Part shown: positions 3,324 to 53,727 of the stretch, piece by piece
How the letters are laid out: each line of letters begins with the position of its first letter
Numbering within the stretch: the first letter of the stretch is position 1
Virus record (IMG/VR): IMGVR_UViG_3300005613_000001
Span: 186,001 to 250,000 of that record
DNA: 64,000 nucleotides
Reading direction: 5' to 3' (one strand)
The notes under the pieces: generated by a model
Database searches by the model: none
Told to the model about the DNA's origin: nothing
What the model saw: only the letters and a program-made list of their open reading frames with translations
Program-made: the position numbers and the translations under genes

Positions 3324-3767
3324 ATGCAATTTAGAACCTTTTTAATAGAGTCAGAGAGTGACTATAAGGAAGAGTTGAAAAAAACGATATCTAAAATTCC
3401 TAAAGCTCATGCTGCGCTTATTAAGGGTTTTAAATACATTTTCCAAGGAACAAATACTTTAAAAAATGACGGGGAACATGTAGGTCTCATAGATCAAAAA
3501 AACAAAAAAATCGTTATTGCATCTCCTTGGAATTACGGCAGAGAATACACACTTTTACACGAAATAGGTCATTTAGTATATGAAAACTTCATGACAGATG
3601 AATTGAAAAAGCAATGGAAACGGATTGTAGAAAGGACTAAAGATAAGCAAAACCAAGGAGCGGAAGAGCTATTTTGTATGGCATATGCTAACACATACGC
3701 CAAAAATAAAATTGAAATTCACTCCCACGGCGAATGGGAGCAATTTATTAAAAAATTGCCTAAATGA
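3324..3767 (+). CDS. Zincin-like metallopeptidase with a capsid-targeting-like N-terminus
   Basis: LLHEIGH (HExxH) plus downstream AEELFC; N-terminus MQFRTFLIE. Confidence 0.6.
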   Translation: MQFRTFLIESESDYKEELKKTISKIPKAHAALIKGFKYIFQGTNTLKNDGEHVGLIDQKNKKIVIASPWNYGREYTLLHEIGHLVYENFMTDELKKQWKRIVERTKDKQNQGAEELFCMAYANTYAKNKIEIHSHGEWEQFIKKLPK

Positions 3768-3793
3768 CATAGATACTGAAAAAGAGGATAAGA

Positions 3794-4198
3794 ATGGGCA
3801 TTCGATATAAACTTAAAAGCGAAGCTGATAGAATTGATTACCTCCCCCCCCACGGACCAGGATCACAAGGAAGACAAGAGGCGGCTAATGTCGCTGATTA
3901 TACCGTGGACTTCTTACTCCAAAAAAGACTGCGCACGGTCGTAAAACGAAAATCAGGAGAATTAATCCAAGAAGACGATTCCCGAGAAGGAGAATACGTT
4001 AAAGATACCTATTTCGTAGCCGCCTCCATACCCGATGGAACTGCTGACAATAAGCCTGAGCATGTCACATTGAGACGACCTGTTGGTGCTTTTGATGTGA
4101 ATGTTATTCTTTTCGTAGAAGACGGCGAGGGTCCAGTCGTGAGCATGATGATGATGGCACCTACAAATGCTACATTGATTCCATTCTGGTCGTTTTAA
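3794..4198 (+). CDS. Hypothetical protein
   Basis: GAGG RBS, TAGATA box at 3770-3775, 134-aa ORF. Confidence 0.55.
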   Translation: MGIRYKLKSEADRIDYLPPHGPGSQGRQEAANVADYTVDFLLQKRLRTVVKRKSGELIQEDDSREGEYVKDTYFVAASIPDGTADNKPEHVTLRRPVGAFDVNVILFVEDGEGPVVSMMMMAPTNATLIPFWSF

Positions 4199-4941
4199 AC
4201 ACCTGCTGTTAATTGCTGGGCATCTCGAAGCAATCCCGGTATTGTAACCATAGCTTGTTCGCTTAATCTCTCATATTCATTAATATCAAGAGAAAATATC
4301 TTATAATGATGACAAACAGGATTTCGCATAATCTGGGGCTTCCACCCACGATTTTGTGCCCTGACCGTCATAATAAAATTACCTCCAATTTGAGGTAGCT
4401 CTTTGGGATAAGGACCAATATCATCCCAAGTCTTGCGAGTGACCAATAAGCAATATTCCTGAATGAAATCTACTTTCTGGTTTTGCATATAATAAGACTG
4501 CAACTCAACACCCACCATTCCTGAATCCTGAGCCTCTGAAACATTAATTAATAAATCAATCCAGGCAGGATTAGTAATTACCACATCGCAATGTAAGAAA
4601 AGAAAATAATTAGAACCTTTATCTGCTTGCTCAATCCCCTTGTTGATGGCCGGACCCCAGTATAAATTTTCTTCATTCCTAACAATCTTAATTCCATCAT
4701 CTTCAATTTCATCCAAGAAATCCTGTGTTTCTTGACCAGATCCATTGTCAACTACTATAATCTCATAATTATTATTACTGCTAGTGACTGCTATGGATTG
4801 CAAACATATATTTAAATATTCAGGTCTATCCTTGTGTACTACAATAACTGAAATTTGCTCTTCACTTCCATCTGCTGTCATATTAAAAGACAACTCCGGC
4901 CTCTCGCCCTCTAGGGGATTGTGTGGTGTAATATTTGCCAT
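4195..4941 (-). CDS. Glycosyltransferase family 2
   Basis: ISVIVVHKDR, EIIVVDNGS, AINKG, FLFLHCD GT-A signatures. Confidence 0.8.
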   Translation of the reverse strand: MANITPHNPLEGERPELSFNMTADGSEEQISVIVVHKDRPEYLNICLQSIAVTSSNNNYEIIVVDNGSGQETQDFLDEIEDDGIKIVRNEENLYWGPAINKGIEQADKGSNYFLFLHCDVVITNPAWIDLLINVSEAQDSGMVGVELQSYYMQNQKVDFIQEYCLLVTRKTWDDIGPYPKELPQIGGNFIMTVRAQNRGWKPQIMRNPVCHHYKIFSLDINEYERLSEQAMVTIPGLLRDAQQLTAGV

Positions 4942-4943
4942 AT

Positions 4944-5177
4944 TTAATTCTCAATATCTATTTCATGTACTCCAACTTGACATACGCACTTAATCGTCTT
5001 GCCCTCAGAAGTAATAATATTTTCTTCAAATTGCTCTCTGGATAATTTATTCACAAACTTCTCAGCCCGTGCTTTGTCCATAAAAACTCTCTCAAATCTA
5101 ATTCCAACGTGATCTAGAAGCGCAGAAGGCCCATCTATTTCCCTAGAAACCGTAACCACTGCCCATGCCTTTTTCAT
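4944..5177 (-). CDS. Hypothetical protein
   Basis: Part of a tightly packed minus-strand run. Confidence 0.55.
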   Translation of the reverse strand: MKKAWAVVTVSREIDGPSALLDHVGIRFERVFMDKARAEKFVNKLSREQFEENIITSEGKTIKCVCQVGVHEIDIEN

Positions 5178-5479
5178 CTATTTTCCTCCCGCCTCTGTTT
5201 AGCAATGCGACTCAATTGAGCTTTCACTAACTGCTTATAACGTGGCAATACGCCGTGCGGATATTTAGAAATCGTTTTTATTAATTCTTGTGTCGTGTAC
5301 TCATCATACTCTTGTTCTTCAATCCATCCGATTACAGATTTCAAAGTAACCTCAACACCACGGCTCCTACTTTTAGATTTGGTATCTTGAGAGGCGGCTT
5401 TACTCTCTTGAATCATTTGTCGCATATTACTGGCCCTGTCCTGCGACACTTGTGTATCAAAATTTAGCTTTTCTGGCAT
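5174..5479 (-). CDS. Hypothetical protein
   Basis: 4-nt overlap with the next gene, helical composition. Confidence 0.55.
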   Translation of the reverse strand: MPEKLNFDTQVSQDRASNMRQMIQESKAASQDTKSKSRSRGVEVTLKSVIGWIEEQEYDEYTTQELIKTISKYPHGVLPRYKQLVKAQLSRIAKQRREENR

Positions 5480-5805
5480 TGTGCCCTTTCTTCTTTAAAT
5501 TGCTCTACAACTTCCGGTGGAACCTCAGGAATCGCTACATCATGTCCGAAACTTCGCCATCGAAGAAACTCAAGCGTTTTACTCTTCAGCTTTTCTAAAT
5601 GAGGAAAATCACCCTGGAAATCAATCTGCTGTGTCTCGTAATCTATGTATCCCGTGACTAACGTTGAGACTCCATCTATTTCACAAGTCACCCTAATAGG
5701 GATCACATTAGCTACATGAACAATTTTAACTTCAGAGTCATCATCGTCAGGAACAGGAACCGCCTCCATTTCTTCTACATACTTAAAGCGAGTATCCTCT
5801 GACAT
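5464..5805 (-). CDS. Hypothetical protein
   Basis: ORF in operon-like arrangement. Confidence 0.55.
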   Translation of the reverse strand: MSEDTRFKYVEEMEAVPVPDDDDSEVKIVHVANVIPIRVTCEIDGVSTLVTGYIDYETQQIDFQGDFPHLEKLKSKTLEFLRWRSFGHDVAIPEVPPEVVEQFKEERAQCQKS

Positions 5806-5857
5806 TATTGAACTCCAATAGACTAAATAGGTTGTGAAATTAGTATAGTAACTGCAT

Positions 5858-6286
5858 ATGTTAAAATTTAAAGAATACCTTCGGCAAGTGGAAATGAACG
5901 TACCAGGAAAACACCTGGATTACGCACAAGGAGCCATAGGTCCAAGCCACAACACGGGAAGTGAAACCGGAGCTAGCGATACATATGGCAACAGAACACT
6001 ATCAAGCCAAGATTTAATAGTCAAAGGCGTGCCACATGAAACGATTGTGGGTCGCGTTTCAATGATTGACCCATCTAAAACCCCAATCTATATACAGGTA
6101 GCCAATGACCGGGGTGTAGTTTTAGCTCATATTAAAATACCCGAACGAGATTTAAATATGAGACTTACAGGGGTGCCGTCAAGATTAGAAGATATAAAAG
6201 GTAAGCGAATAAGAATCGTCCTTCAGCGAAGTCAGGAAGATACGTCCAAAACCTTTACGAAAATAGCTTGGGGACAAATTTATTGA
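5858..6286 (+). CDS. Hypothetical protein with a capsid-targeting-like N-terminus
   Basis: MLKFKEYLRQVE start; TAAATA at 5824-5829. Confidence 0.55.
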   Translation: MLKFKEYLRQVEMNVPGKHLDYAQGAIGPSHNTGSETGASDTYGNRTLSSQDLIVKGVPHETIVGRVSMIDPSKTPIYIQVANDRGVVLAHIKIPERDLNMRLTGVPSRLEDIKGKRIRIVLQRSQEDTSKTFTKIAWGQIY

Positions 6287-7807: not shown

Positions 7808-7821
7808 CTTTCTCTCCTTTG

Positions 7822-10963: not shown

Positions 10964-11479
10964 TTATTTAATGGGCTCTAATTTGCAAATAATGCGATTG
11001 CCTTCAAACTTAGGTTTTAACACAACCTTGCCCACGTTGTCAACATATTCTATTACTTTTTCTACGACCTTAAAACCTTGATCTTTGTGCGCAAACTCTC
11101 TGCTTTTAAACATCACGTTCAATTGCAGGTGCTTGCCTTGCTCTAAGAATTTTAAAGCAGCCTTAGACTTGGTTTCAATGTCATGCTCAGCAATTTTGGG
11201 GCGGAGTCTAATTTGTTTTAGCTCCACGCCTTTTTGCTTCTTTTTATCTTTGTTCTTTGTAGATTGTTGGTACTTATATTTCCCATAATCCATTATAGAG
11301 CAAACAGGGGGGCGGGCATGAGGAGCAACCTCAACCAAATCTAATCCCTCTTCTTGCGCCATTTTTCTGGCTTTATAGGTAGGATAAACACCAATATTTA
11401 AGCCATCCTTAACAACCCGAACTGGAGAAATCCGTATTTTCTCGTTTACACGAACGAACTGATTCTTTTCTTTTTTCAT
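10964..11479 (-). CDS. infC: Translation initiation factor IF-3
   Basis: VNEKIR, GLDLVEVAP, PPVCSIMDYGKYKYQ, LKQIRLRPKIAEHDIETK, MFKSRE. Confidence 0.93.
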   Translation of the reverse strand: MKKEKNQFVRVNEKIRISPVRVVKDGLNIGVYPTYKARKMAQEEGLDLVEVAPHARPPVCSIMDYGKYKYQQSTKNKDKKKQKGVELKQIRLRPKIAEHDIETKSKAALKFLEQGKHLQLNVMFKSREFAHKDQGFKVVEKVIEYVDNVGKVVLKPKFEGNRIICKLEPIK

Positions 11480-14227: not shown

Positions 14228-15166
14228 TTATATCAGGCTCCTCACAGCCAAATCTAACTCCATAGCACGATTTTTTAATTTATCGTTATTTTGAACAAAT
14301 TGCAGGACTTTCGGCCAATATTTTTTAACGGTAGGTCCAAACTTAAAAGAGAATTGAGCAAAATGCCTGTTGCTTTTAGCAAGGTATTTAACACCCTTCC
14401 CTATAGCGTCTCCAATTTCGGGAATCATTGAAATAATAGACATGGCAGCCAAGAAGTATTTCCACTGCTTTTCTCTTCCCTTAGATTTCTCTGCCTCTGC
14501 CATATACCAAGCTGCATTGGCAAAATCAGCGCCTTCGCCCAAACCAGGAATCAATCCAACAGCATCTAATCCCATATGCCCTAATTCAGCAGCACCCTCC
14601 CGCCTCAATTTCCATTCTTTGAATTTGGGTGGTATATTGGGCGGCTGTACTTTCGGAGGCTCAAAAGGAGGCGGGGGCGGCAATTCATTGATTTCATCTT
14701 CTTCGCCGGGCTCTTCTTCAGGGGGAGTTAGCTCTTGTTCCTCGTCGCCCACTTCAAGATCTCTGAAATCGTCTTCTTCCTCGCCCTCATCTTCTTCCGG
14801 GTTGAATTCTAAATCTTCGGGCTTGGGCTTATCTTCATCGTCTTCTTCATCATCCCAAAAGCCATCCAAATCCCGTTTTAGCTTATCTACAGCCTCTAGC
14901 CATTTATCTACTTCTTTATTAACCGGGGGCTGGGTTTTGCCCTCTTCCAACGCCTCTTTTATTTTCTTTTTCTTCTTTTTAGACTTCTTCTTCTTCTTCT
15001 TTTTCTTCTTTTTGTATTCAACTTCACGCGGATCGGCAGTTGATCTTGAGAAGATAGCTTGAGGAGCCATATCGGGACCAAGACCCAGAAGCCACATATG
15101 GCGGGATCTTGTAAAGGCGCTTGATTCTTGACTATCTAAGAATTCTTTGAATCGCAATGGTTCCAT
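14228..15166 (-). CDS. Low-complexity protein with a C-terminal pre-toxin TG (PT-TG)-like domain
   Basis: GLDAVGLIPGLGEGADFANAAWY...LAAMSIISMIPEIGD matches the PT-TG pattern; poly-K, acidic and Pro tracts; TAAATA box at 15173-15178. Confidence 0.6.
   Translation of the reverse strand: MEPLRFKEFLDSQESSAFTRSRHMWLLGLGPDMAPQAIFSRSTADPREVEYKKKKKKKKKKSKKKKKKIKEALEEGKTQPPVNKEVDKWLEAVDKLKRDLDGFWDDEEDDEDKPKPEDLEFNPEEDEGEEEDDFRDLEVGDEEQELTPPEEEPGEEDEINELPPPPPFEPPKVQPPNIPPKFKEWKLRREGAAELGHMGLDAVGLIPGLGEGADFANAAWYMAEAEKSKGREKQWKYFLAAMSIISMIPEIGDAIGKGVKYLAKSNRHFAQFSFKFGPTVKKYWPKVLQFVQNNDKLKNRAMELDLAVRSLI
14963..15013 (-). repeat. AAG/AAA codon run encoding K10-S-K6
   Basis: Read directly from the sequence. 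Confidence 0.9.
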
Positions 15167-15182
15167 GAAAGTTATTTAGGAT

Positions 15183-17689: not shown

Positions 17690-17932
17690 TTACCTTAAAT
17701 CTTTCATCTTGGCTTTTTGTTTAGCTTTTTCTCTTTCACTCTCTTTGCGTTTCCTTCTTCGCTTTTCACCCTTACTTTCGAAGAACTCACGCCTCTTATA
17801 TTCTGCAAGAATCCCTGTTTCATTCACTTGCCTTTTAAATAAGTTAAACAAATATTTAAATGACTTTTCTTGTTCATCCTTCCCTCTAGGGTTCTCCCTT
17901 AATTGAACCCTAACTCGGGCATGTTGTGACAT
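17690..17932 (-). CDS. rpsU: 30S ribosomal protein bS21
   Basis: FKRQVNETGILAEYKRREFFESKGEKRRRKRKES. Confidence 0.85.
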   Translation of the reverse strand: MSQHARVRVQLRENPRGKDEQEKSFKYLFNLFKRQVNETGILAEYKRREFFESKGEKRRRKRKESEREKAKQKAKMKDLR

Positions 17933-23829: not shown

Positions 23830-24420
23830 TTAGGTCAAATAAGACTTCAAGAAATCAGGCGAAATTGAATCACTTAATGCATCTATCTGCGCCTTCATAT
23901 TTTCTATTTGAGTTTGAATTTTCTTGCCCTGGTCACTCTTAGCCAAAGCATCCTTGTTGTTCAGCTTGCTTTCTAATTCATGAAGATTCACTTTCATGTC
24001 GTGAAGCTGCTCCAACTGGTTAACATCAGCCAAATTGGGCTTATAATTTTGATCTTTTCCGACAGAAGCGGGTTGAATGGGGTTAGCAGCATTGGCAACA
24101 GTAGAAGCAACATCTCCTATTTCCTTTTTGCCAAGATCAGGCTCTATAGGTTGAGGAGCAGGCGTAATCCGATCATCTTCATTCAAATTCTCCTCGCATG
24201 CCGGGTCCACTCCAACTTGGTACTTGCACCCACTTAACTTATTCCAATATTCAACATCGCCCTCCTGAAGCAATTTGGGGGCGGGGGTATTGCTTTGCCC
24301 AAAGAAATCTTCTTTTTCTACGCCAGCCTCAGGCTTAGTGGTAGGAGACTCAATGGTGCCATCCTTTTGAGCCTTATCCCACATATCCACCCATTTATCG
24401 AATTTATTGTTGTCTGTCAT
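23830..24420 (-). CDS. Hypothetical protein with a C-terminal coiled coil
   Basis: 196-aa ORF; TATATA upstream. Confidence 0.6.
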   Translation of the reverse strand: MTDNNKFDKWVDMWDKAQKDGTIESPTTKPEAGVEKEDFFGQSNTPAPKLLQEGDVEYWNKLSGCKYQVGVDPACEENLNEDDRITPAPQPIEPDLGKKEIGDVASTVANAANPIQPASVGKDQNYKPNLADVNQLEQLHDMKVNLHELESKLNNKDALAKSDQGKKIQTQIENMKAQIDALSDSISPDFLKSYLT

Positions 24421-24469
24421 AATAATTTATATATTAGTCAATTTGTCATTTTATAAACTAAATAGGATT

Positions 24470-25684: not shown

Positions 25685-26152
25685 TTCAGGTTCTATAACT
25701 TTCGTTTCAATCACTGTTCCATTTCCTAAATCATCTACACTATCAACAAACTGGTCAAGGTTTTTCATTTCAATGAGACTCCAATGAGGATCATCTTCAG
25801 GGACATTCTCTGGTTTCGTCCAATAAAACTGCTCGAATTTATATTTATAGATTTTTTCAGCTACATCTTCCACCGACATGCCGGAATGTAAATCTTCCGC
25901 CATTTCTCCACACACCCTCAATGAATCACCTTCAACAGCGCCTCCTAATTTTCTCAGCAAGATAGCACATTCTTGAGCTTTATACGTATTCACCAGCAAA
26001 TTAAGAATATCGCGTTTTAAGTTGCCATCTACGAATTCAACAATAGCCGTATACTTAGCCATTGTTTGCCCTCGCTCGGGCTTATGATTTCTATTCACTT
26101 CAAAAAAGTGTTCATGAAAATTAGATTCATCAATTATCAGTTCTTCTGTCAT
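25661..26152 (-). CDS. Hypothetical protein
   Basis: Probable ATG at 26152 (MTEELIIDE), with GGAG upstream inside the dnaE 3' end. Confidence 0.55.
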   Translation of the reverse strand: MTEELIIDESNFHEHFFEVNRNHKPERGQTMAKYTAIVEFVDGNLKRDILNLLVNTYKAQECAILLRKLGGAVEGDSLRVCGEMAEDLHSGMSVEDVAEKIYKYKFEQFYWTKPENVPEDDPHWSLIEMKNLDQFVDSVDDLGNGTVIETKVIEPESEVPEGS

Positions 26153-28991: not shown

Positions 28992-29031
28992 AAATATAAT
29001 TGATTCTCTATAAATCGTCAAGGGAGACAAT

Positions 29032-37519: not shown

Positions 37520-37672
37520 TTAGGCGGCTTCTTCTTGTTGATCTTGAGCCGAAATGACTTTAGAAATGTCACACGATTCTATAGCTTGGTGACATTGAAC
37601 ACAATGAACTTTAGTTCTTTGAACGATGAAAAGCAGACCGCCACAATTTGGACATCTCATGTCAGAATCCAT
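37520..37672 (-). CDS. 50-aa zinc-ribbon protein (below the ORF-track size cutoff)
   Basis: Hand translation MDSDMRCPNCGGLL...HCVQC...QDQQEEAA*; AGGA RBS. Confidence 0.65.
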   Translation of the reverse strand: MDSDMRCPNCGGLLFIVQRTKVHCVQCHQAIESCDISKVISAQDQQEEAA

Positions 37673-41025: not shown

Positions 41026-41076
41026 TTAAATATAAAGGCTAGATAAAGTAATAAAACAAGCTAGAGGTATCAGATT

Positions 41077-42096
41077 ATGGCTTATGCATCATTTCAAGAT
41101 TATTTAGAAGTTAAGAAAAATTGCAAATGCAAAATGGCTGTTGAGAAACCGCCCGTTGAAGAAGTGCCCGATTATCACGGTGACACTAATAAAGCAGGTG
41201 AAGAGGGTAAAGAAAAACGAAAAGGCATCAAAAATCACCAAGTTCAAGAACGTGCCCGCACGTTTCAAGAATACCTAAATGCTAAAGGTAGCATGCAGGA
41301 TAAGCCTGGAAGTGGCATGGGTGATGACCATTTCACCGATGAAAAAGCACCCCCAAAGGGTTCAATTCCTCCAGCCAATGTAAGTGGCGGAAAGCCTCAC
41401 CCTTATAAAGCCGCATCTATGTCCACTGGGGACAAAGCCTTTGGCGATATGGGTGTTGATCCACCGTATGAGCCAAAAACTGATACCTCTAAGCTTGAAA
41501 CTAAGCCTACTATGCCCAAAAGTGAAAAGGGTGTTCCACAAGCCGAATCATTGATTTCCAACAAAAGTCTAATTTCTGTTACCCAACTAATGTCGGAACT
41601 AAATGATAAAGTTGTGGATTATGATATCCCCTCCATTACCGTTGGTAGGGACAAATTTCATCCGAACCCCTTGGAAGCCGTAGAATATGTCGCATATCTC
41701 GTAGGTGAAAATAGAAACCTACTCGATGTATTCCTCAGAATTCTTAAAAAAAGAGGCGTTAAATTAATGGAAGCCATCGCCCCGCCTATCGGATTTGAAG
41801 GCGATGAAACCGAAGCTGAAGTTCTTAAAAAAAAGAAACCCGACTTAGGGGACTTTGAGGACGAAGAAGAAGAAACGCCAGCAGAAGATGAATTTGGGGC
41901 GGAAGATGAGGAAGATCCTGACGATGGGTTTGGAGCAGGTGACGAAGAAGATGAATTTGGTGGCGAAGAAGAAGCCCCCGAAGATGAAATGGGACCGCCC
42001 GAGATGGAACGCCCAAGGCGACATAAAAATCGCAAAAGAGGGTTCGGACCAGAAATAGAAGGCCCCGGAATGGGTGCTGGACCAGAAATGGCGTAA
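41077..42096 (+). CDS. Low-complexity acidic protein with a capsid-targeting-like N-terminus
   Basis: MAYASFQDYLE start, internal RTFQEYL, D/E-rich tail; TAAATA 41027-41032 and TAGATA 41040-41045. Confidence 0.6.
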   Translation: MAYASFQDYLEVKKNCKCKMAVEKPPVEEVPDYHGDTNKAGEEGKEKRKGIKNHQVQERARTFQEYLNAKGSMQDKPGSGMGDDHFTDEKAPPKGSIPPANVSGGKPHPYKAASMSTGDKAFGDMGVDPPYEPKTDTSKLETKPTMPKSEKGVPQAESLISNKSLISVTQLMSELNDKVVDYDIPSITVGRDKFHPNPLEAVEYVAYLVGENRNLLDVFLRILKKRGVKLMEAIAPPIGFEGDETEAEVLKKKKPDLGDFEDEEEETPAEDEFGAEDEEDPDDGFGAGDEEDEFGGEEEAPEDEMGPPEMERPRRHKNRKRGFGPEIEGPGMGAGPEMA

Positions 42097-44153: not shown

Positions 44154-45539
44154 TTATATATCCTCAATGGGCACAGGATCAATATTATTAAACCTTAACT
44201 TCATTGAGCGACCGCCCCTTGATTCACTAAGGAAACGCGAGAAAAGAAGATCGTGCTTAATGGGATCAACGTCGGTAATACCCAAACAATAACAGGTCAA
44301 TGCCCCTACGGCTGATCCTCTTCCGGGGCCAACTGCCTCTGATCCATCTCCCCAGCCTAGTAATCTAGGGAAGGCAATTCTAGCCTCATCTGTCATCTGT
44401 TTTTGCATTAAGAAGTAAGTAGAGAATCCTTTTCGGCATATCAATTCATATTCTTCCTTAATCCGATTTAAATACCTATTTTCCGTGGGCAACCTTCTAG
44501 CTTTAACTCCCTCTATGATTACCTCTTTGAACATTTCATCAGCATCAGGAAACTGGGGAAGTTTAATACTACGGTCTAATTGTACGCCTTTTGCTTTCTC
44601 GCATATTACAACCGTATTTTGTTTAGCTTGTCTAAAGAGATCGTCAGGGATTACTTGGCTATACTTCTTGAGCCACATTTGGTTGAGTTCATCTTCTGAC
44701 TTCATCCAAAGGTTAGTATCCTGTAGTTCAAAGAAATCCGCATCAGGATTGGCTCTCATTTTCTCTTCAATTTCAGCCATTGTTGTGTTGGTTTGAAGCA
44801 TCAACATCAATCGCTGCATCAAAGCATCTTCTTCACGGCAATAGTGACAATCATTTGTGACAACGAGAGGAATGCCATACCTGTCGTGTGCTTTAATAAT
44901 AAATTTATCAAAAGGTGTTTGTTTGTCAAAATCCAAAAGCATCATTTCCAAGTAAAAATTATCTGGAAACATCTGCTGATATTTTTCAACCATTGCAAAT
45001 CCAGCTTCATCCCCACCCTCGCAATGAAAGCCATCAAATGCTTGTCCTATCTCGCCATTATAACAGCCTGACGAGAATACGATTCCCTCTTTGTATTTCA
45101 GTAATTGCTCATGATTCACACGGGGTCGCTTTGGACGACCGCCCTGACCATTAATCCAAGCCCAAGAACTTAAATTAACCAGATTTGCGTATCCAATCTC
45201 ATTATAAGCTATAGCTAATAAATGGAAGCTTTTACGAAGATAAAGCTTTTCATTCTCAGTGAGGTTAGATTGGAAATCAGCATACTCATCCTTATTCCTT
45301 ACACCGGGTTGCATTGGGTTGAGATATAATTCACATGCGAAAACAGGATGAATGTCGTGTTTTTCACAAGTCTTAATCTGACGGGGGATAACCCCCATTT
45401 GCCCGTGGTCCGATATACAAAGAAACTTCTGATTTACCTGCTGAGAGTATTCTGCGTACTCTTCAGGGTGAGCGTAGCCATCAAGAAGTGAGAAGTGGCT
45501 ATGGCGGTGAAGGTGCTCAAAACCCACAATATCAATCAC
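44154..45539 (-). CDS. dnaE: DNA polymerase III alpha (DnaE), N-terminal PHP-domain polypeptide of a split enzyme
   Basis: HLHRHSHFSLLDG, SDHG, ACELY, NDCHY, GPGRGSAVG, LGITDVDP, LFSRFL; ends before the PDxDxDF motif. Confidence 0.92.
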   Translation of the reverse strand: MIDIVGFEHLHRHSHFSLLDGYAHPEEYAEYSQQVNQKFLCISDHGQMGVIPRQIKTCEKHDIHPVFACELYLNPMQPGVRNKDEYADFQSNLTENEKLYLRKSFHLLAIAYNEIGYANLVNLSSWAWINGQGGRPKRPRVNHEQLLKYKEGIVFSSGCYNGEIGQAFDGFHCEGGDEAGFAMVEKYQQMFPDNFYLEMMLLDFDKQTPFDKFIIKAHDRYGIPLVVTNDCHYCREEDALMQRLMLMLQTNTTMAEIEEKMRANPDADFFELQDTNLWMKSEDELNQMWLKKYSQVIPDDLFRQAKQNTVVICEKAKGVQLDRSIKLPQFPDADEMFKEVIIEGVKARRLPTENRYLNRIKEEYELICRKGFSTYFLMQKQMTDEARIAFPRLLGWGDGSEAVGPGRGSAVGALTCYCLGITDVDPIKHDLLFSRFLSESRGGRSMKLRFNNIDPVPIEDI

Positions 45540-46748: not shown

Positions 46749-48383
46749 CTATGTATTGGCTATGAAACGACTTACATTCGGCTCAGCCCATTTATTTTCG
46801 TACTCATCACGCGACATTACACGCACATTGTCTTCAGACTTGGGATCGTCACATATATAAACAATCTCCTGATTGTCACCGTCTCTTGTGGATAATAAAA
46901 CAGAGTTCTTCCAAATATTACAAATTGAAACCATAACGGCTCTTGCATAAGGCTCATGTAGTGGTCTGCCGTCCCATGTGTGTTCTAACAAAAATGTTCC
47001 ACGACCACGATGGTTTGGATCAACCAAACGAATATGAGGCTGTCCACCATTCAAATAACTCTTAAGAAGCTTCTTTTTAATTTGTTGATAATCCTTACTG
47101 ACTATGACATACTCGCCCTTTGGGGTTTTTTCCCACTCAAAGAATTCATTCTCATTACAAAAATCTTCTGTAAAGAATTCGGAAATAGCCATAAAGTCAT
47201 CATAGCACTTTCTGACTTCAAAAATCTTCTCTTTCCCTAAACCCAACTCTTTATCCCAATCTTCTCTTTCTTTTAAATTGTCACATGATTCGTACTCTTC
47301 TCCAAACCTTCCTTTATTCCACCTATCTTCTATATCTTGGAATATTTGGAATCCTAATTTGTATGGATTCAAAGAATACTTGCCACCCATAACCATCATT
47401 CTAGCCTTGGCATATTCTACTATACCGCAGTCTTCACCTTCCTGCCCCAAAGCTGCCATTCCGTTGCAAGCCAAAACTTCATAATCAACCTTAGAAGCCC
47501 AGCCCTCATTCATCATCTTGGTTCTAATTTGGGGAGAAAAATACTCCGCCTCCTCATGAAGCATGGCAATAATATCCGCCTGCCATTGTTTAAGGGGCGC
47601 ATTGTCTCTGAGATAGCCTAAAATATCTCGGGAAGGAGAAGTAAACAATTCTAATTGTTCGGCAATTTCAGCCTTCTTTATTCTCTCTTGCTCCTTCTTC
47701 TTCCACGCCTCCGTATTAATCCAATCTTCCATATAATCCCGTTCCTCATCAACTTTGAGGCGGCGGGCGTTATGGTATCTCCTTTTGTCTTTAAATTCTG
47801 TCTTCTTTTTATGCGTTTGCTTAGTTTTAGCAGGATCAATTAGATTCTCTAGCCTTAGAACATGATCAATAAACTCCATCACTCGTTCTTTGCCCCACCG
47901 AGCCATATACTTTCTAATTCTCATACCATTATTTGCCATTTTGTTCATCATATTAGTATCGGTATGAGAAAAATAAACATTGTTCTTGAAGAAGTCATTA
48001 TGTCCTAGAGCATGTGCAACCACCATCACATTATCAACAAAAGTATTACTGCTAAGACAATAGATGTAGCAAGGGTTGGTATTAATAACCAACTCCGCGA
48101 TACGGCGACTTCCAATGTCATATCCTCTTTGGAGTTCTTCGTATTCCATTCCAAATTTCCAGTGAGGATACCTAACAGGGAACCCATAATATGCTGCAAT
48201 TTCACTAATTTCGTCATCTCGCAACACTTCAACTACGGCAGGATAAAAGTCACAACCGTAATCCCTAACCCCTTGAAAAATCTTAGGGAGTTGTTTTTTA
48301 AGCTCTTCCGGCAAGCTTGCACCAGGAACAGTATTGTCCCCGATAAGCAATGACGATCCCATCAATGATCTTAAACTTGGCAT
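46749..48383 (-). CDS. spoVR: SpoVR (YcgB) family protein
   Basis: GFPVRYPHWKFG, AELVIN, VVAHALGHNDFF, MNEGWAS, NPYKLG. Confidence 0.92.
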   Translation of the reverse strand: MPSLRSLMGSSLLIGDNTVPGASLPEELKKQLPKIFQGVRDYGCDFYPAVVEVLRDDEISEIAAYYGFPVRYPHWKFGMEYEELQRGYDIGSRRIAELVINTNPCYIYCLSSNTFVDNVMVVAHALGHNDFFKNNVYFSHTDTNMMNKMANNGMRIRKYMARWGKERVMEFIDHVLRLENLIDPAKTKQTHKKKTEFKDKRRYHNARRLKVDEERDYMEDWINTEAWKKKEQERIKKAEIAEQLELFTSPSRDILGYLRDNAPLKQWQADIIAMLHEEAEYFSPQIRTKMMNEGWASKVDYEVLACNGMAALGQEGEDCGIVEYAKARMMVMGGKYSLNPYKLGFQIFQDIEDRWNKGRFGEEYESCDNLKEREDWDKELGLGKEKIFEVRKCYDDFMAISEFFTEDFCNENEFFEWEKTPKGEYVIVSKDYQQIKKKLLKSYLNGGQPHIRLVDPNHRGRGTFLLEHTWDGRPLHEPYARAVMVSICNIWKNSVLLSTRDGDNQEIVYICDDPKSEDNVRVMSRDEYENKWAEPNVSRFIANT

Positions 48384-49612
48384 TATAATCCCTGAACTTG
48401 AACTTTAATTTTTTGTCTCCCCAGAAGGTCTTTGATTGCCTTCTGGATTCCTTCATTTCTCTCATCTTCACTCATAGATGGAGAACCATACCCGAGCGTA
48501 AAGCCCTTCTGTTTTTCTTCAGGGCCGACTCCTGTAAGCCTCACTTGCTCCCCGTCTAAATAACCTTCTTCAACCTTCTTGTGTACAAACTGTTTTAAGC
48601 TGCCCTCGTAATTCCAAGGTAGAACTTGGGTTATTCCTACAAAATTGGCTATATTGGGAGGAAACTTCTCTTTGATAACTTGACAAAACCTATCATTATC
48701 ATTATCCCAATTTTCACCATCAGAAAAGTAAAATAGGTAAATGTTCCACTTCTCGGGAGGAAAACGATATTTTAATTGTTTAGCAATCAAACTTAATGCT
48801 GATGAGCATTTAGTCCCGCCTCCATAACGATACTTATAGAATTTCTCCTCATCTACCTCTTGAGCTTCTGTATCATGTACGAAGTAACACCGTTCTGTTT
48901 TCTTATAGAAACTACGAATCCAAACATCAATCCACCAAGACATATCAGATACAATATCACATTTAAAATCATTCATTGAGTATGAACAATCTCTTGCAAA
49001 AAAGATAACCGCATTGCTAGATGGCTTCTTCAACACTTTGTATTGCCTATACCTAAAATCGCTGTTTATAGGCGTAATCATCCTTACCTTTTCGACCATT
49101 CCAGGTATTGCGTGCAGCTTATCCGCCTCCCCTACTTGCACCAGCCTTTGATAAGCCTTCATGAGTGTGCGTTTCATATGTCGTAGAGAATGGGGGCCTG
49201 TTAATGAAATGTCATTATACTTATACTCAGTTTCCTCAAAGGTCTGATTTTCCTTTGGTTTAAGATTAGGAAGCTGAAGCTCATCTTGCATGAATTTTAA
49301 GATGTGTTCCAAATCAATTTGGAGTTCAATTCCTTCATTGTGTTGATCTCCTGGCTTGTTGCCTTTCCCTGGCTGTGGGTCACGACCAATCACATCTCCT
49401 GGTTTGCCGGGGCCTCTCCCAACCCCTATTTTATTATCCCCGTATTTAAACCGAGGAATAGCAATCCTATCGATTGGGATGCCAATTTTACCACCCTTAG
49501 CCCTTTGGCGAAATATTGTGCCTTTTGACATGTATTTGCGTATAGCTTTGCGGGCGCGACCTTCCACAACATCCCTAAAGTGTTTGTGGTCTTCTTCTAC
49601 TCTTCTTGGCAT
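48383..49612 (-). CDS. yeaH: YeaH/YhbH (DUF444) vWA-domain protein
   Basis: ELQLPNLKPK, RDCSYSM, GGGTKCSSA, WNIYLFYFSDGENW. Confidence 0.92.
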   Translation of the reverse strand: MPRRVEEDHKHFRDVVEGRARKAIRKYMSKGTIFRQRAKGGKIGIPIDRIAIPRFKYGDNKIGVGRGPGKPGDVIGRDPQPGKGNKPGDQHNEGIELQIDLEHILKFMQDELQLPNLKPKENQTFEETEYKYNDISLTGPHSLRHMKRTLMKAYQRLVQVGEADKLHAIPGMVEKVRMITPINSDFRYRQYKVLKKPSSNAVIFFARDCSYSMNDFKCDIVSDMSWWIDVWIRSFYKKTERCYFVHDTEAQEVDEEKFYKYRYGGGTKCSSALSLIAKQLKYRFPPEKWNIYLFYFSDGENWDNDNDRFCQVIKEKFPPNIANFVGITQVLPWNYEGSLKQFVHKKVEEGYLDGEQVRLTGVGPEEKQKGFTLGYGSPSMSEDERNEGIQKAIKDLLGRQKIKVQVQGL

Positions 49613-49626
49613 TTCCTTGTCCTTTT

Positions 49627-49690
49627 AAAAAAAGGGCGTGATCTCTCTGTATAATCAAGGATGAAATATAAAAATCGAGAGACCACGCCC
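49627..49690 (-). terminator. Large-loop hairpin with a U7 tract between prkA and yeaH
   Basis: GGGCGTG.TCTCTC / GAGAGA.CACGCCC stem followed by TTTTTTT on the minus strand. Confidence 0.55.
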
Positions 49691-49699
49691 AAACCCTAT

Positions 49700-51787
49700 C
49701 TATTCATCTTCTTCCGCTAAATTTCCCCTCGCAAAAATACTCCCAACATGATCCAATACATCGGAGGCAGACTTTTCATTGTAACCAAAATCTTTAATGA
49801 GCCTCGTCTTAATAGCATCGATCTTCTCTTGTAGGTCAGGATCAACAACAGCAGCACCGCTAACATTTAATGCACTCAACTTAATGTGATCCTTTGTATC
49901 CTCAAACAATTTAGCTTGAAGTGCTTTCTTGAGTTCGGGGTTGGAGTCCCAAGTGAATTTCTTCCCTTTATTCGCCAAATCACCCATGAACGCTGCTAAT
50001 GTAACTCTGAAGTCCTCAGCACCCGTACCTGGAATATTGATCTTCTCTTCAATGCTTCTCATCAACTGCTCATTGGGCTCTTCCTCCCTACCAGTATAAG
50101 GATTTAACACCTTTGATTCATTAATGGAAGCCATCATATTATCAATATAATTGCTGCACAATCTGACAATTGCAGTCTTATCCGACACAAGGGCTTTCTG
50201 AACTTCATTCTTCAATATATCATCCAATTCTTTAATAGCTAAATCAGCACATTCTACATATCGCTTCAACCTCTCTTTATCACTATACAAAGAATTGTGC
50301 TTCAAGCCTGATTTGAGTTCATTCATCACCATAAAGGGATTTACATAATCGTAATTATCACTCAGGCAATTGGAAATCTTATCCTGAACGTATCGGGCAC
50401 TAATCCCACCAACCATACCCTCTTCGTCCTGCTTCTCCTTAATTTCCTTAACCTTATCCTCAGTCCATCCAGGCATAGCCCGACCGTCGTATAATTTGAC
50501 CTTCTTGACCAAATCGCCAATCTCCTCATTATCTTTGAGGCGGCTTAAAATGGCGAATAAGCCCGCAATTTCCAAGGTATGTGGAGCCACATGCTGCTTT
50601 ACTTTGCCTTCGCCATAATCCTGTTCATAGACCTTCATCTCCTGTGACCATTCAAGCAGATAAGGCACATCAATCTTAAAGGTTCGGTCACGCAACGCCT
50701 CCATAAATTGATCTTCCTGCAATTTAACAAATTCAGGATTATTGGTGTGCCCAAGAAGAACTGTATCAATACCAATCTGGGGGAATTTCTTAGGCTTGAT
50801 TTGCTGCTCTTGGGTAGCACCTAACAAGTCATAAAGGAATTCTTTTTGAAGCTTTAAGATTTCAATGAACTCCACCATTCCCCTAGAACCAACACAAAAT
50901 TCCCCATCAAAATTAAATGCTCGGGGATCGGAGTCACTACCAAAGTGGGCAATCTTGCTCCAATTGATATCTCCGGTTAGTTCCGTGGAGTCTTGATTTT
51001 TTTCATCCTTGGGCTGGAAGGTTGCAATGCCCACACGATCAGCTTCCGAGTGTACCTTTCTAATCACCCTAATGTGACCGTCTAACACTTTTTGAAGATC
51101 GCCATTGTAACGGTTCAATAATTCCTTCATGTACTTCTTACACCGGGGATTTAACGAACCCATAATCCTCAAACCATAAAGCCCAATCCTGTCTTCCTCA
51201 GGGGTTAATTCATGCAAGCGATTATTCAATCCACCCAAAACCTCTTGTTGTAATTCCGCAGGGAGCAACTTCAAAGGTTCATCGTTCATTGGGCATTCAT
51301 CTACATCATTTGTAGCAATGCCCTTCTGTCCCGTAGGAAGATCAACCCACTTAAATGTATACCAAGCCCCATCATCCGTGCGGGAGTATCTTTCTAACCC
51401 TCTTTTTAAGAGGCGGCAGATAGTGGATTTTGAAGACCCAACAGGTCCGTGGAAAAGTAAAATTCTTTTCTCAGGACCATACCCCCCAGCAGCACCACGA
51501 ATGAATCTAACAAAATTATTTAAAGTTTCCTCAAGTCCAAAAATGGGGATCTCTGGATCGTCAAAGAAGTGATAATTGGTATATGTGTGACGATACTTCT
51601 GAAACTTAGAAGTCCCCCCTGCCATTATCATGTCGTATATTCTTTGGTAGGCTGTGCGGATAAGGCGGGGTCGGTCATTCACCCGATTAAGGTACTCAGA
51701 GAATGACATCTCCTCATTCAACGCACAAAACTGTTCTCGATTAAATTTGCCAAGTAGTTGCGAATAGCTGTTATTTTCAGGTTCCAT
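49700..51787 (-). CDS. prkA: PrkA/YeaG AAA+ serine kinase-like ATPase
   Basis: LFHGPVGSSKST, DPRAFNFDGE, EFIEILK, LLGHTNNPEF, EALRDR, GISARY. Confidence 0.93.
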   Translation of the reverse strand: MEPENNSYSQLLGKFNREQFCALNEEMSFSEYLNRVNDRPRLIRTAYQRIYDMIMAGGTSKFQKYRHTYTNYHFFDDPEIPIFGLEETLNNFVRFIRGAAGGYGPEKRILLFHGPVGSSKSTICRLLKRGLERYSRTDDGAWYTFKWVDLPTGQKGIATNDVDECPMNDEPLKLLPAELQQEVLGGLNNRLHELTPEEDRIGLYGLRIMGSLNPRCKKYMKELLNRYNGDLQKVLDGHIRVIRKVHSEADRVGIATFQPKDEKNQDSTELTGDINWSKIAHFGSDSDPRAFNFDGEFCVGSRGMVEFIEILKLQKEFLYDLLGATQEQQIKPKKFPQIGIDTVLLGHTNNPEFVKLQEDQFMEALRDRTFKIDVPYLLEWSQEMKVYEQDYGEGKVKQHVAPHTLEIAGLFAILSRLKDNEEIGDLVKKVKLYDGRAMPGWTEDKVKEIKEKQDEEGMVGGISARYVQDKISNCLSDNYDYVNPFMVMNELKSGLKHNSLYSDKERLKRYVECADLAIKELDDILKNEVQKALVSDKTAIVRLCSNYIDNMMASINESKVLNPYTGREEEPNEQLMRSIEEKINIPGTGAEDFRVTLAAFMGDLANKGKKFTWDSNPELKKALQAKLFEDTKDHIKLSALNVSGAAVVDPDLQEKIDAIKTRLIKDFGYNEKSASDVLDHVGSIFARGNLAEEDE

Positions 51788-51822
51788 ATTTATATCCTTG
51801 TTAGTGGGGCTTCAACAACCGG

Positions 51823-51851: not shown

Positions 51852-51856
51852 GAATA

Positions 51857-52195
51857 TTATTTAACTTCTCCAAAATGTTTGCCGCTGGAGATGTCATCTA
51901 TGTTGTTATATGGGGTTGGACCTACGTGTGACAACTCTTCGGCCATTTTTCGTTGATCTCTTACACCACCATCTTTTTCCATTTGGTGATGGTAACGAAG
52001 ATCATGAGAAGCTGCGTATTTTTTAGTGCCTTCGGGGTTGGTGAAGGTCATCGTACACGCAGAAACCTTAAGAATTTTTGCTTTAGAATTACATTCAGGA
52101 CAACAAACTTTAGAATACTTGCCAGTTTCATCATAAGCAGCCAACTCTTCATAGTCATTGTCGCATTTCTTGCATTTAAACTCATACATCGGCAT
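51857..52195 (-). CDS. FmdB-family zinc-ribbon protein
   Basis: MPMYEFKCKKC...CPECNS. Confidence 0.8.
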   Translation of the reverse strand: MPMYEFKCKKCDNDYEELAAYDETGKYSKVCCPECNSKAKILKVSACTMTFTNPEGTKKYAASHDLRYHHQMEKDGGVRDQRKMAEELSHVGPTPYNNIDDISSGKHFGEVK

Positions 52196-52493
52196 TTTTC
52201 TTGTCCTTTTCCTTCACTTCTATAAGCAATTTATCAAACACCATATACGCCTTGCCAATCATTCTTAACTTGGTTTTAAAAGAGTAGAATCTCCACCAAA
52301 TAGACTTCTCTAACATTTTAATTGATGTTTGAAGTAGCTTTAAATTCAAATTATTTTCCTCTATCTCTAGCTGCATCGCGTGGAGAAGTTCTTCTTTATA
52401 CCCTTCTTCATCTAAAAATTCCCCCTCATCATCAAAAAACCTATCAACCTCATGCCTAAATTCATCATTATCTTCATAATCAAAATTTCTCAT
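52182..52493 (-). CDS. Hypothetical protein
   Basis: Probable start ATG 52493. Confidence 0.5.
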   Translation of the reverse strand: MRNFDYEDNDEFRHEVDRFFDDEGEFLDEEGYKEELLHAMQLEIEENNLNLKLLQTSIKMLEKSIWWRFYSFKTKLRMIGKAYMVFDKLLIEVKEKDKKNADV

Positions 52494-52495
52494 GT

Positions 52496-52993
52496 TTATC
52501 CTATCATTGAATAGATGGGGTACAACTTTCTCCACAATTCTAATATCTTCCATTCATTCACTGCCATGCTTTCCTTCCGAAAGTTCGCCACCCGGATAAA
52601 GGGAGCCTCAATGCTATTTATCCATTCGGCTAATATAAAATTACCGCATCTCTCATTATAACGCGCAAAGGTAGCAACCTCATCAGATGTGGCTTCACAA
52701 ACCTCAAACCCCCTCCACTCCCTCACGGCCATCGTATCACAATTTATTTCATAGTCATATTCATGAGTGGCAGTAGGATTAACATAATAAAATTCTAACT
52801 CAAGCTTGACACACCATTTAAACAATTCTATTGGAGAAGATTTTGATTTATCACACAAAATCATAAACTTGGCATCAGGAAGGTTTTTTAATAAAGAATA
52901 CCACGACGCCATAACCATCCAGTTATGATGGGGTAAATAGTTACACTTAATCGCAATGGTAACACCATCCCCTGTCGGGCTAATTTGCTTCAT
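52496..52993 (-). CDS. Hypothetical protein
   Basis: ORF in operon. Confidence 0.55.
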   Translation of the reverse strand: MKQISPTGDGVTIAIKCNYLPHHNWMVMASWYSLLKNLPDAKFMILCDKSKSSPIELFKWCVKLELEFYYVNPTATHEYDYEINCDTMAVREWRGFEVCEATSDEVATFARYNERCGNFILAEWINSIEAPFIRVANFRKESMAVNEWKILELWRKLYPIYSMIG

Positions 52994-52994
52994 A

Positions 52995-53204
52995 CTACAG
53001 CATTACTTCCTCGCCGGTTTCAGAATCAACAATGATAAAATTATCTTTGAAATCATACCAGCCTTTTAATTTCAAATATTCATGGAAATCTTCCATTGAT
53101 GCTTTTAAGTCCTTTATATTGTTACCAACAACATACGGAACGCCAGTTTGAGGGTGGCTTAAAGTCTGTCCCGTTTCCCTATTAAATAAAATATAAGTGG
53201 TCAT
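52995..53204 (-). CDS. Hypothetical protein
   Basis: 4-nt overlap coupling. Confidence 0.55.
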   Translation of the reverse strand: MTTYILFNRETGQTLSHPQTGVPYVVGNNIKDLKASMEDFHEYLKLKGWYDFKDNFIIVDSETGEEVML

Positions 53205-53416
53205 TTGCTTATATCTAAAGTAGTGTTGGGCGGGCGTTTTACCTTATAGAGAACGCCTGGTTTGCCAGAAATGGGATTAGGATTAGGCATAGCAGCCTTG
53301 GGGCTAACCGGCCCAGAGGGGTTGGCAGGCTTGAGAGTGACAGGGCTAGTAAGAGATATGTTCCTCTTACCGCCTCTATTATCTTTTTCTAAGAGAAATT
53401 GCCGAAATGTCTTCAT
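53201..53416 (-). CDS. Small basic Pro-rich protein with a capsid-targeting-like N-terminus
   Basis: MKTFRQFLLE start. Confidence 0.6.
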   Translation of the reverse strand: MKTFRQFLLEKDNRGGKRNISLTSPVTLKPANPSGPVSPKAAMPNPNPISGKPGVLYKVKRPPNTTLDISK

Positions 53417-53727
53417 TTTACCTTCATCTTCTTCATCTTTTTCTTCATCATCATGCGGTCGCCCTCTTCCTCTTCAGCGGTTTTAGCAATAGCAGAAACA
53501 GCCTGTTTGGGAGCCACTGTTCCACCTGTATTATCCACTGCTACTTTAGCGGCTTTTGCTACTACCGTAGGATCTTGCAGCTTATCTGCCACTGTTTGTC
53601 CGGGGTTAAGATTTTTGCCTGTCAGAACCGAGTTCACCGCACCCGCCGCTGCTTTATTGGCTTGACGAGTCACTAATGGAGACATATTCTCTAATTTCTC
53701 TTTATACCACTCTCTAAATGTTTTCAT
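53413..53727 (-). CDS. Ala-rich protein with a capsid-targeting-like N-terminus and K/M tail
   Basis: MKTFREWYKE start at ATG 53727; TAAATA at 53733-53738; MMMKKKMKKMK tail. Confidence 0.6.
   Translation of the reverse strand: MKTFREWYKEKLENMSPLVTRQANKAAAGAVNSVLTGKNLNPGQTVADKLQDPTVVAKAAKVAVDNTGGTVAPKQAVSAIAKTAEEEEGDRMMMKKKMKKMKVK

Follow-up and report, generated by a model that had tools for sequence, protein, structure and literature searches.

The window examined here is the whole 64,000-nucleotide stretch at positions 186,001 to 250,000 of the virus record IMGVR_UViG_3300005613_000001, a 527-kb virus with T4-type head genes. Six genes in this window, and probably a seventh, encode proteins that begin with a short leader closely resembling the capsid targeting sequence (CTS) of phage T4 internal proteins, and an eighth gene carries a copy of the motif near its C-terminus:

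3324..3767 (+), leader protein 1 (147 aa), leader MQFRTFLIE; the cargo is a small HExxH zincin-like protein.
3310..3316 (+), CTAAATA box, 7 nt before the ATG at 3324, with no Shine-Dalgarno (SD) sequence.
5858..6286 (+), leader protein 2 (142 aa), leader MLKFKEYL; the cargo has no Pfam or PHROG hit; CTAAATA at 5823-5829, 28 nt upstream.
14228..15166 (-), leader protein 3 (312 aa), leader MEPLRFKEFL, with a poly-Lys tract, an acidic low-complexity region and a C-terminal IPxxG repeat region; CTAAATA at 15179-15173, 6 nt before the ATG.
23830..24420 (-), probable seventh member (196 aa), MTDNNKFDKWVDMW (MTDNNKFDKWV); ATATATA box 7 nt before the ATG; it shares a 49-nt divergent intergenic region with the gene starting at 24470 (+), which has its own CTAAATA box.
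41077..42096 (+), leader protein 4 (339 aa), leader MAYASFQDYLE, with a second internal copy, RTFQEYL, near residue 62 and a very acidic C-terminal half; CTAGATA at 41039-41045, 31 nt upstream.
53201..53416 (-), leader protein 6 (71 aa), leader MKTFRQFLLE; its start overlaps the stop of protein 5, and it has a GAAGGT SD-like site and no box of its own.
53413..53727 (-), leader protein 5 (104 aa), leader MKTFREWYKE, from an ATG inside a longer GTG ORF; CTAAATA at 53739-53733, 5 nt before the ATG, with no SD.
55250..55498 (-), an 82-aa protein with a C-terminal copy of the motif (FREWLETEN at residue 68).

The six N-termini had been singled out in an initial annotation, which described otherwise unrelated ORFs sharing an F-x-x-(F/Y/W) motif and lying behind a late box, with the ORF at 53416 served through co-transcription with that at 53727. 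This observation is confirmed, since all six ORFs start as described (three of the listed coordinates being minus-strand starts), although the size of the family was underestimated.

A scan of the entire genome shows that the motif is far more frequent than expected by chance. Between 32 and 47 of about 791 called proteins begin with M-x(0-4)-F-[KRQ]-x-[WFY]-[LIVMF], often followed by E, whereas about 1 is expected from shuffled sequences. Specifically, 36 of 791 proteins start with M-x(0-3)-F-[KRQ]-x-[WFY], compared to 2.7 expected from the internal rate, and on addition of [LIVMF] there are 32, compared to 0.9 expected from 200 shuffles, whose maximum was 4. Of 5012 ATGs followed by at least 40 open codons, 50 carry the motif, and 34 of these are called gene starts. 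Likewise, an unbiased scan of N-terminal tripeptides places TFK, KTF and WLE at the head of the list, with TFR also among the top six. The family has about 40-47 members in this genome. The gene calls were made for this analysis and some of the starts are wrong, but independent gene calls in public databases give the same N-termini for more than 100 homologs.

The proteins that follow the leader are unrelated to each other. No BLAST pairs at E<1e-3 were found among 47 leader-stripped cargoes. Codons at the conserved positions vary (F is TTT in 29 cases and TTC in 18; L uses TTA, CTT, CTA and CTC; R uses AGA, CGA, AGG, CGT and CGG), so selection acts on the peptide. Among NUDIX homologs, only the four closest carry the leader, while more distant proteins with the same core do not. 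Cargoes with a recognizable domain are enzymes (NUDIX, GNAT, a PolyA_pol/CCA-type nucleotidyltransferase, a PRTase domain and a small zincin), two cargo proteins are large (751 and 947 aa), and most are ORFans. The leader proteins are hydrophilic and lack transmembrane segments.

Two cargo assignments made in the initial annotation were examined further. The PT-TG domain proposed for the protein at 15166 is not supported, because a Pfam scan at E<=0.1 lists only DUF4112 (E 0.0043), which at 17.7 bits falls below its cut-off of 23.3. The HExxH protease proposed for the protein at 3324 is only a weakly supported small zincin. Residues H79, E80 and H83 are invariant in 89 aligned homologs, and some JGI records name homologs ImmA/M78, but Foldseek hits to zincins are weak (E 0.03-0.3, TM about 0.5), as is the PHROG metallo-protease match (E 0.011). 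The leader is retained by 167 metagenomic homologs of this protein. F3 is invariant in the 89-homolog alignment, yet residues 1-9 are left unplaced (pLDDT <50) in an AF2 model with a pLDDT of 87, a pattern that is typical of a motif acting in trans.

The resemblance to the T4 CTS is genuine when compared with the T4 record (NC_000866), where IPII and IPIII begin with MKTYQEFIAE and IPI begins with MKTFKEFTST. In T4, where the leader has about 10-20 residues, targeting depends on large hydrophobic or aromatic residues at positions 4 and 7 (as determined for IPIII) and processing on an aliphatic residue at position 8 and Glu at position 10 (PMC9026906), and the conserved positions of the new leaders (4, 7, 8 and 9/10) correspond to these. 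An F at residue 3-6 is followed three residues later by W, F or Y in 36-47 proteins. At the positions that direct processing in T4, where gp21 cuts after Glu, the agreement is less uniform: L, I, V, F or M follows the aromatic residue in most leaders and E lies at +5 or +6 from F in 25 of 37, but a [LIVMF]-x-E ends by residue 12 in only 21 of 47 leader proteins, compared to 72 of 732 other proteins. The T4 gp23 cleavage site LTE|A aligns to LFNE|T in the capsid protein of this phage. The propeptide of the T4 gp24 vertex protein, MAKINELLRE, has the same spacing of hydrophobic residues at 4, 7 and 8 and Glu at 10, although it resides on a structural shell protein rather than on an internal cargo.

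The genome also encodes the T4-type machinery that a CTS would require. Pfam searches identified a Gp23 capsid protein (278 bits) and a Peptidase_S77 (gp21-family) prohead protease (92.8 bits, above the cut-off), between which lies a gene for a 311-aa acidic coiled-coil, gp22-like scaffold, and no HK97-type (S78) protease was found. BLAST reveals homologs of T4 gp17, 18, 20, 21, 23, 24, 6, 15 and 25.

Similar leaders are present in other phages. A 595-kb relative whose capsid protein is 74.5% identical has about 43 leader genes, and orthologs keep the leader, although most leader proteins of the present phage lack a homolog even in a relative this close. A more distant 484-kb T4-like phage (LR756508) carries the variant M-x-[FL]-K-x-L-L-x-E, which closely resembles the gp24 propeptide, on 23 proteins, compared to 1.0 expected; however, 15 of these 23 are paralogs. 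Flavobacterium phage immuto has MENFDLKKFLVE on a gene directly upstream of its terminase, portal, protease and capsid genes.

The CTAAATA box upstream of many leader genes is identical to a published late-promoter consensus of the T4-like phage Aeh1 (CTAAATA from -12; PMC1524935) and resembles the T4 late promoter TATAAATA (-13 to -6). The box is enriched upstream of gene starts, with TATATA and TAGATA variants also common, and it precedes the terminase (TerL), head operon, sheath, gp15 and gp6 genes. It lies within 100 nt of 31 of 47 leader genes, compared to 188 of 744 others. The box usually ends 5 nt before the ATG with no SD, so that the predicted transcription start is the A of the ATG, which implies leaderless late mRNAs. 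This arrangement, which is not described for T4, is found for 20 of 47 leader genes and 53 of 744 others (odds ratio 9.7, p 2e-10). Late timing is nevertheless inferred only. The box also precedes some replication genes, including PHP-DnaE and gp47, and a single-sequence search with T4 gp55 found no late sigma factor homolog at E<=10, although a divergent homolog could be missed by such a search.

On this evidence, the explanation we favor, with moderate confidence, is that the shared N-terminus is a CTS-like propeptide of a huge phage in the T4 superfamily. By analogy with T4 IPI, IPII and IPIII, the roughly 10-residue leader would form a short amphipathic segment whose hydrophobic face (F at position 3-4, W/F/Y three residues later and L/I/V next to it) would bind the gp22-type scaffolding core while the prohead assembles. 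The gp21-family protease would then cut after the Glu that follows (...[LIV]-x-E), freeing the cargo inside the head to leave with the DNA at infection. What the sequences themselves demonstrate is a strongly N-terminal motif on unrelated cargoes, its conservation at the peptide level and across relatives, its match to the functional positions of T4, the presence of T4-type protease, scaffold and capsid genes, and the preferential location of leader genes behind a T4-like late box. By contrast, binding to the core, cleavage, packaging, ejection and any early anti-defence function are inferred only. The initial interpretation, that these proteins are packaged, cleaved after Glu and injected as candidate first-minute anti-defence effectors, is thus partly supported.

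Several points count against this model. Searches uncovered no RNA or proteome data for this uncultured phage, and only about half of the leaders have a T4-style [LIV]-x-E within 12 residues. The motif also occurs internally or C-terminally more often than chance (F[KR][EDQ]W[LIVMF] is found 8 times, compared to 0.77 expected), which a purely N-terminal propeptide model does not predict. Moreover, T4 itself has the same leader on gp61.1, an uncharacterized ORF in an early region, some cargoes look like housekeeping enzymes (NUDIX, GNAT and nucleotidyltransferase), and the two large cargo proteins also count against the model.

The internal and C-terminal copies of the motif, its presence on ordinary enzymes and its occurrence on T4 gp61.1 leave room for an alternative that we consider unlikely, in which the leader is a short docking motif or degron for a partner other than the prohead core, such as a phage or host protease/unfoldase, a chaperone, or a replication or transcription hub, and serves to time the activity or turnover of many accessory proteins rather than to package them. 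The conserved but structurally unplaced nature of this amphipathic linear motif is compatible with such a role, and KTFKE loosely resembles ClpX N-terminal recognition motifs reportedly described by Flynn et al. 2003. However, this alternative is countered by the near-identity of the leader to the experimentally defined T4 CTS, by its co-occurrence with gp21, gp22 and gp23, by the enrichment of a Glu in a cleavage-like context, and by the placement of leader genes inside or beside head modules (G000 420128-420439 and 428861-429328, and immuto gp076).

Less likely still, the conserved start could be a translation feature, either an N-terminal coding ramp or a nascent-peptide signature that makes leaderless, SD-less late mRNAs efficiently translated, perhaps together with the IF3 and bS21 proteins encoded by this phage. 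The strong association with the leaderless architecture and the A/T-rich first codons favor this possibility. However, 27 of 47 leader genes are not leaderless and some have an SD, 53 leaderless-type genes lack the motif, conservation is by amino-acid class with free synonymous codons and extends to residues 7-10, and the same peptide occurs in T4 on mRNAs with a normal SD leader. Chance, a gene-calling artefact or a single paralogous family is effectively refuted by the shuffle and ATG controls, the absence of paralog pairs in this genome and the independent gene calls for homologs.

The closest known system is the set of T4 internal proteins IPI, IPII and IPIII and their CTS (Mullaney & Black 1996; reviewed in PMC9026906 and PMC3012670), which share a leader of the form M-K-T-[F/Y]-[K/Q]-E-[F/W/Y]-[I/L]-x-E on diverse cargoes. 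The new family differs in having about 40-47 leader proteins per genome rather than 3-4, in including recognizable enzymes and proteins up to 947 aa, in the dominance of W at position 7, and in having many leaderless genes behind a late box, whereas T4 ip genes have SD leaders and early-type promoters. The polymorphic internal-protein loci of T-even phages, whose diverse products share only the CTS and act against restriction enzymes (PMC3012670, PMC9026906), offer a precedent for a fast-turning-over arsenal, but here the scale is larger, the genes are dispersed over the whole 527-kb genome rather than at one or two loci, and no member is known to have anti-restriction activity. The giant heads of phiKZ-like phages (SPN3US and phiKZ; PMC5694885, PMC7411985) carry tens of different internal proteins processed after Glu by a gp21-related protease. 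However, their propeptides are mostly long (over 100 residues), with an A/S/G-x-E site and no short shared consensus leader, and these phages belong to a different lineage.

A bolder reading, which is possible but remains tentative, is that a clade of 0.5-0.6-Mb T4-superfamily phages uses one portable ten-residue tag to load some 40 different, rapidly exchanged proteins, including enzymes that act on nucleotides, RNA ends and proteins, into a giant head. These proteins would be made from a dedicated class of leaderless late mRNAs, possibly read with the help of phage-encoded IF3 and bS21, and the infecting particle would deliver a pre-made starter proteome rather than just a few anti-restriction proteins. 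In this view, lineage-specific variants of the tag (F-K-E-W-L-E-E here, F-K-D-L-L-F-E in LR756508 and Y-Q-E-F-I-A-E in T4) would co-evolve with the scaffold.

If the leaders work as in T4, a simple sequence rule would predict the injected-protein repertoire of uncultured huge phages, yielding dozens of candidate first-minute effectors against bacterial defence systems, most of them ORFans. This would show that the T4 encapsidation tag is ancient, portable and expandable, which is useful for engineering protein delivery in phage capsids, and would offer one answer to what very large capsids carry besides DNA. Separately, the apparent class of about 70 leaderless late genes, in a phage that also encodes IF3 and bS21, gives a concrete handle on why huge phages carry translation-initiation genes.

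The 527,112-bp IMG/VR virus record to which the window (bases 186,001-250,000) belongs is rated complete by CheckV. The GC content is 40.8% and the standard genetic code fits, while alternative codes were considered and not supported. The genome carries a T4-type head module, including a Pfam Gp23 major capsid protein (278 bits) and a Peptidase_S77 (T4 gp21) prohead protease (92.8 bits), between which lies a gene for a 311-aa acidic coiled-coil gp22-like protein. A gp17-like terminase and a gp20-like portal are also present, and no HK97-type S78 protease was found. The portal gene (genome positions 429339-431912, minus strand) appears to contain an intein, as its product is 857 aa compared to 524 in T4 and includes a CLAGNT...HNC-type insertion. 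BLAST against T4 also finds gp18, gp24, gp6, gp15, gp25, gp41 and gp46/47 at 23-31% identity. A megablast of 5 kb of the window against GenBank phages found no match, and relatives were found only by protein search. The nearest public genome is LR756511.1, an uncultured 595-kb phage with 74.5% capsid-protein identity, whereas cultured relatives reach only about 32%.

Other genes of the window with recognizable identities are as follows (window coordinates).
10964-11479 and 17690-17932 (both minus strand): translation initiation factor IF3 (IF3_C, 89.8 bits) and ribosomal protein bS21 (44.5 bits).
26130-29030 and 44154-45539 (both minus strand): a DnaE-type Pol III alpha split into two distant genes, a PHP + N-terminal part and a core/finger/HhH part.
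46749-51787 (minus strand): a complete PrkA - DUF444 (YeaH) - SpoVR operon.
57869-59062 (minus strand): a TnpB / IS605 OrfB-type gene (OrfB_IS605 + Cas12f1-like TNB), of which the 484-kb phage LR756508 carries at least 7 copies of a 430-aa relative that starts M[KR]LTKTLKFKL.

The initial annotation had described six otherwise unrelated proteins with T4-like capsid-targeting N-termini, and all six N-termini are present where it placed them, three of them on the minus strand. To determine how far this pattern extends, we called genes over the whole genome with a custom Markov caller, which gave 791 genes covering 91% of the sequence. The pattern M-x(0-3)-F-[KRQ]-x-[WFY] starts 36 proteins, compared to 2.7 expected from its internal frequency. 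With the next residue restricted to [LIVMF], there are 32 N-terminal hits against 0.9 in 200 within-protein shuffles, whose maximum was 4. Among 5012 ATGs followed by at least 40 open codons, 50 carry the motif, and 34 of those are called starts. An unbiased scan of N-terminal tripeptides ranks TFK, KTF, WLE and TFR among the top six, with the first three leading the list. The anchored consensus is M-K-T-F-[K/R]-[E/D/Q]-[W/F/Y]-[L/I/V/F]-E-E, and a slightly looser definition gives 47 members spread over the genome.

After removal of the leader, no two of the 47 proteins share BLAST similarity at E<1e-3, which led us to reject an explanation based on paralogy. Codons at the conserved positions vary freely among synonyms, with TTT used 29 times and TTC 18 times for F, five Arg codons and several Leu codons. 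Selection therefore acts on the peptide and not on the DNA or RNA, and a nucleotide-level explanation was likewise rejected. A second small family of shared N-termini, MGA-x-S-x-TG-x-GPGS(AEG), occurs on four proteins (genome positions 122359, 414869, 415287 and 420655, all minus strand), three of which lie next to the head module.

The leaders were compared with those of T4 using the T4 genome record itself. A back-translated pattern found four sites in NC_000866, corresponding to ipII and ipIII (both MKTYQEFIAE), ipI (MKTFKEFTSTTTPVSTITE...) and the uncharacterized gene 61.1 (MKTFKEFIKE; 18966-19130, minus strand). The last of these is a perfect CTS-like leader with an I-K-E site. The gene lies in an early region next to the primase gene, and its product is not known to be packaged. 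A review of the T4 work states that the first 10 residues of IPIII suffice for encapsidation, that targeting depends mainly on residues 4 and 7, and that processing depends on residues 8 and 10 (PMC9026906). Those are the positions conserved here, as F4, W/F/Y7, L/I/V8 and E9/10. The ten-residue propeptide of T4 gp24, MAKINELLRE, has the same spacing (PMC5694885). Also, the T4 gp23 maturation site LTE/A (slash at the cut) aligns with LFNE/T in the capsid protein of this phage. A [LIVMF]-x-E ending by residue 12 occurs in 21 of 47 leader proteins, compared to 72 of 732 others.

LR756511 has about 43 genes with the same leader. Only 250 of the 791 proteins have any homolog there, but where a leader protein does have an ortholog, the leader pattern is usually kept even at 40-55% cargo identity. 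The protein starting at window position 3324 has 167 metagenomic homologs of 48-67% identity on contigs up to 640 kb, and practically all full-length ones start M-x-F-[KR]-x-[FYW]-[LIF]-x-E. In an alignment of 89 sequences, F3 is invariant together with the HExxH residues. Even so, the AlphaFold2 model has a mean pLDDT of 87 but leaves residues 1-9 below 50, which is the signature of a conserved motif that works in trans. In the NUDIX cargo family, only the four closest homologs carry the leader, while more distant ones with the same catalytic core do not.

With the strict pattern, hit counts are 34 in this genome, 28 in LR756511, 4 in T4, 1 in Flavobacterium phage immuto, and 0 in both LR756508 and cyanophage S-SSM4. 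However, an unbiased tripeptide scan showed that LR756508, which has S77 protease matches and 34% capsid-protein identity, has its own variant. Specifically, M-x-[F/L]-K-x-L-L-x-E occurs on 23 of its proteins against 1.0 expected, although 15 of them form one paralogous family. Immuto has MENFDLKKFLVE twice, once on a 99-aa ORF directly upstream of its terminase, portal, protease and capsid genes. Immuto gp076 and its paralog are the nearest cultured candidates carrying such leaders. A search of IMG/VR with an exact back-translated MKTFKEWL pattern found only 9 loci and was too narrow to inform on distribution.

Pfam identifies NUDIX, GNAT, a PolyA_pol-type nucleotidyltransferase and a PRTase domain on four leader proteins outside the window, while about twenty others, including five of the six in the window, have no hit. 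The 3324 protein has only weak support as a zincin, with a PHROG metallo-protease score of E 0.011 and Foldseek hits of E 0.03-0.3 to lethal-factor-type catalytic domains, Pro-Pro endopeptidases, selecase and IrrE. The PT-TG domain proposed in the initial annotation for the protein starting at 15166 is not supported by the Pfam scan. That protein (14228-15166, minus strand) and the one at 41077-42096 (plus strand) are extreme low-complexity polyampholytes, with a run of about 20 Lys followed by long Asp/Glu-rich tracts, and might bind DNA or mimic it. The 41077 protein also has a second, internal leader-like copy, RTFQEYL. Leader proteins are more hydrophilic than the rest (GRAVY -0.66 against -0.46, p 2e-5), and only 2 of the 47 contain a long hydrophobic stretch, whereas charge, pI and length do not distinguish them from other proteins.

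K-mer enrichment upstream of start codons recovered the Shine-Dalgarno (SD) sequence (AAGGAG) and two related boxes, [C/A]TAAATA and [C/A]TATATA. The distance from TA[ATG]ATA to the start codon has a sharp peak at 4-7 nt, with the mode at 5. About 70 genes fall in this peak, and only 4 of 73 have an SD, compared to about half of all genes. The T4 late promoter TATAAATA occupies -13 to -6, and the predicted late promoter of the T4-like phage Aeh1 is CTAAATA from -12 (PMC1524935). A 5-nt gap therefore places the predicted transcription start on the A of the ATG, which implies leaderless mRNAs. Examples in the window are at 3310-3326, 15164-15179, 53725-53739, 24418-24434 and 2543-2560. Divergent pairs share intergenic regions of only 29-49 nt that hold both boxes, such as window 24421-24469 and genome positions 370708-370736. 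The IF3 and bS21 genes may be linked to this SD-less, leaderless gene class.

The leaderless class includes the large terminase. The same box with a normal leader precedes the head operon, sheath, gp15 and gp6, but it also precedes PHP-DnaE and gp47. Genes with the capsid-targeting-like leader are strongly over-represented in the leaderless class (20 of 47 against 53 of 744, odds ratio 9.7, p 2e-10), and also behind the box in general (31 of 47 against 188 of 744). A second promoter-like motif, (G)AAATTGTAC[C/G], precedes 24-34 SD-bearing genes, mostly in the first 180 kb of the genome, lying 20-80 nt upstream of about 34 of them, and may represent the early or middle class. Within the window it is found in the 37520-37672 region (genome position 223520) and at 52182-52493 (genome position 238182), and none of the genes it precedes has the leader. 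The ip genes of T4 itself have SD leaders and early-type promoters, and timing therefore neither proves nor disproves packaging.

The leaders, their enrichment and their conservation are read directly from sequence, whereas their function is inferred. Public sequencing runs yielded only a marine DNA run holding 8% of the words and metatranscriptomes at the 5% noise level. A predicted complex of gp22, gp21 and the 71-aa leader protein scored 0.01, which is no answer and is not counted as evidence, and a search of the genome with T4 gp55 detected no homolog. Packaging, cleavage and ejection therefore rest on analogy with T4.

Moreover, four points weigh against a simple propeptide model. First, the motif also occurs internally and C-terminally above chance, with 8 copies of F[KR]EWL against 0.77 expected, including those at window 55250-55498 (minus strand) and genome positions 371207-371692, 398107-398289, 258192-258557 and 419475-420137. 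The C-terminal copy at 371207-371692 has a counterpart, by position alone, in LR756511 (w474464: SFKEWLSQRI). Second, only half of the leaders have a canonical cleavage context. Third, some cargoes look like housekeeping enzymes. Finally, T4 gp61.1 carries the leader without any known virion role.

The observation made in the initial annotation is confirmed and greatly extended. Its interpretation is supported in part, as encapsidation by CTS-like leaders is the best-supported reading and one that we hold with moderate confidence, while the proposed injected anti-defense arsenal is a reasonable extension that remains hypothetical. A literature search for the leader strings or for CTS-like sequences returned only irrelevant papers, and none of the huge- or jumbo-phage papers retrieved mentions a capsid targeting sequence. 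Although this kind of system is known from T4, what appears undescribed is its roughly ten-fold expansion in huge phages, the lineage-specific variants of the tag, and the coupling to predicted leaderless late genes.
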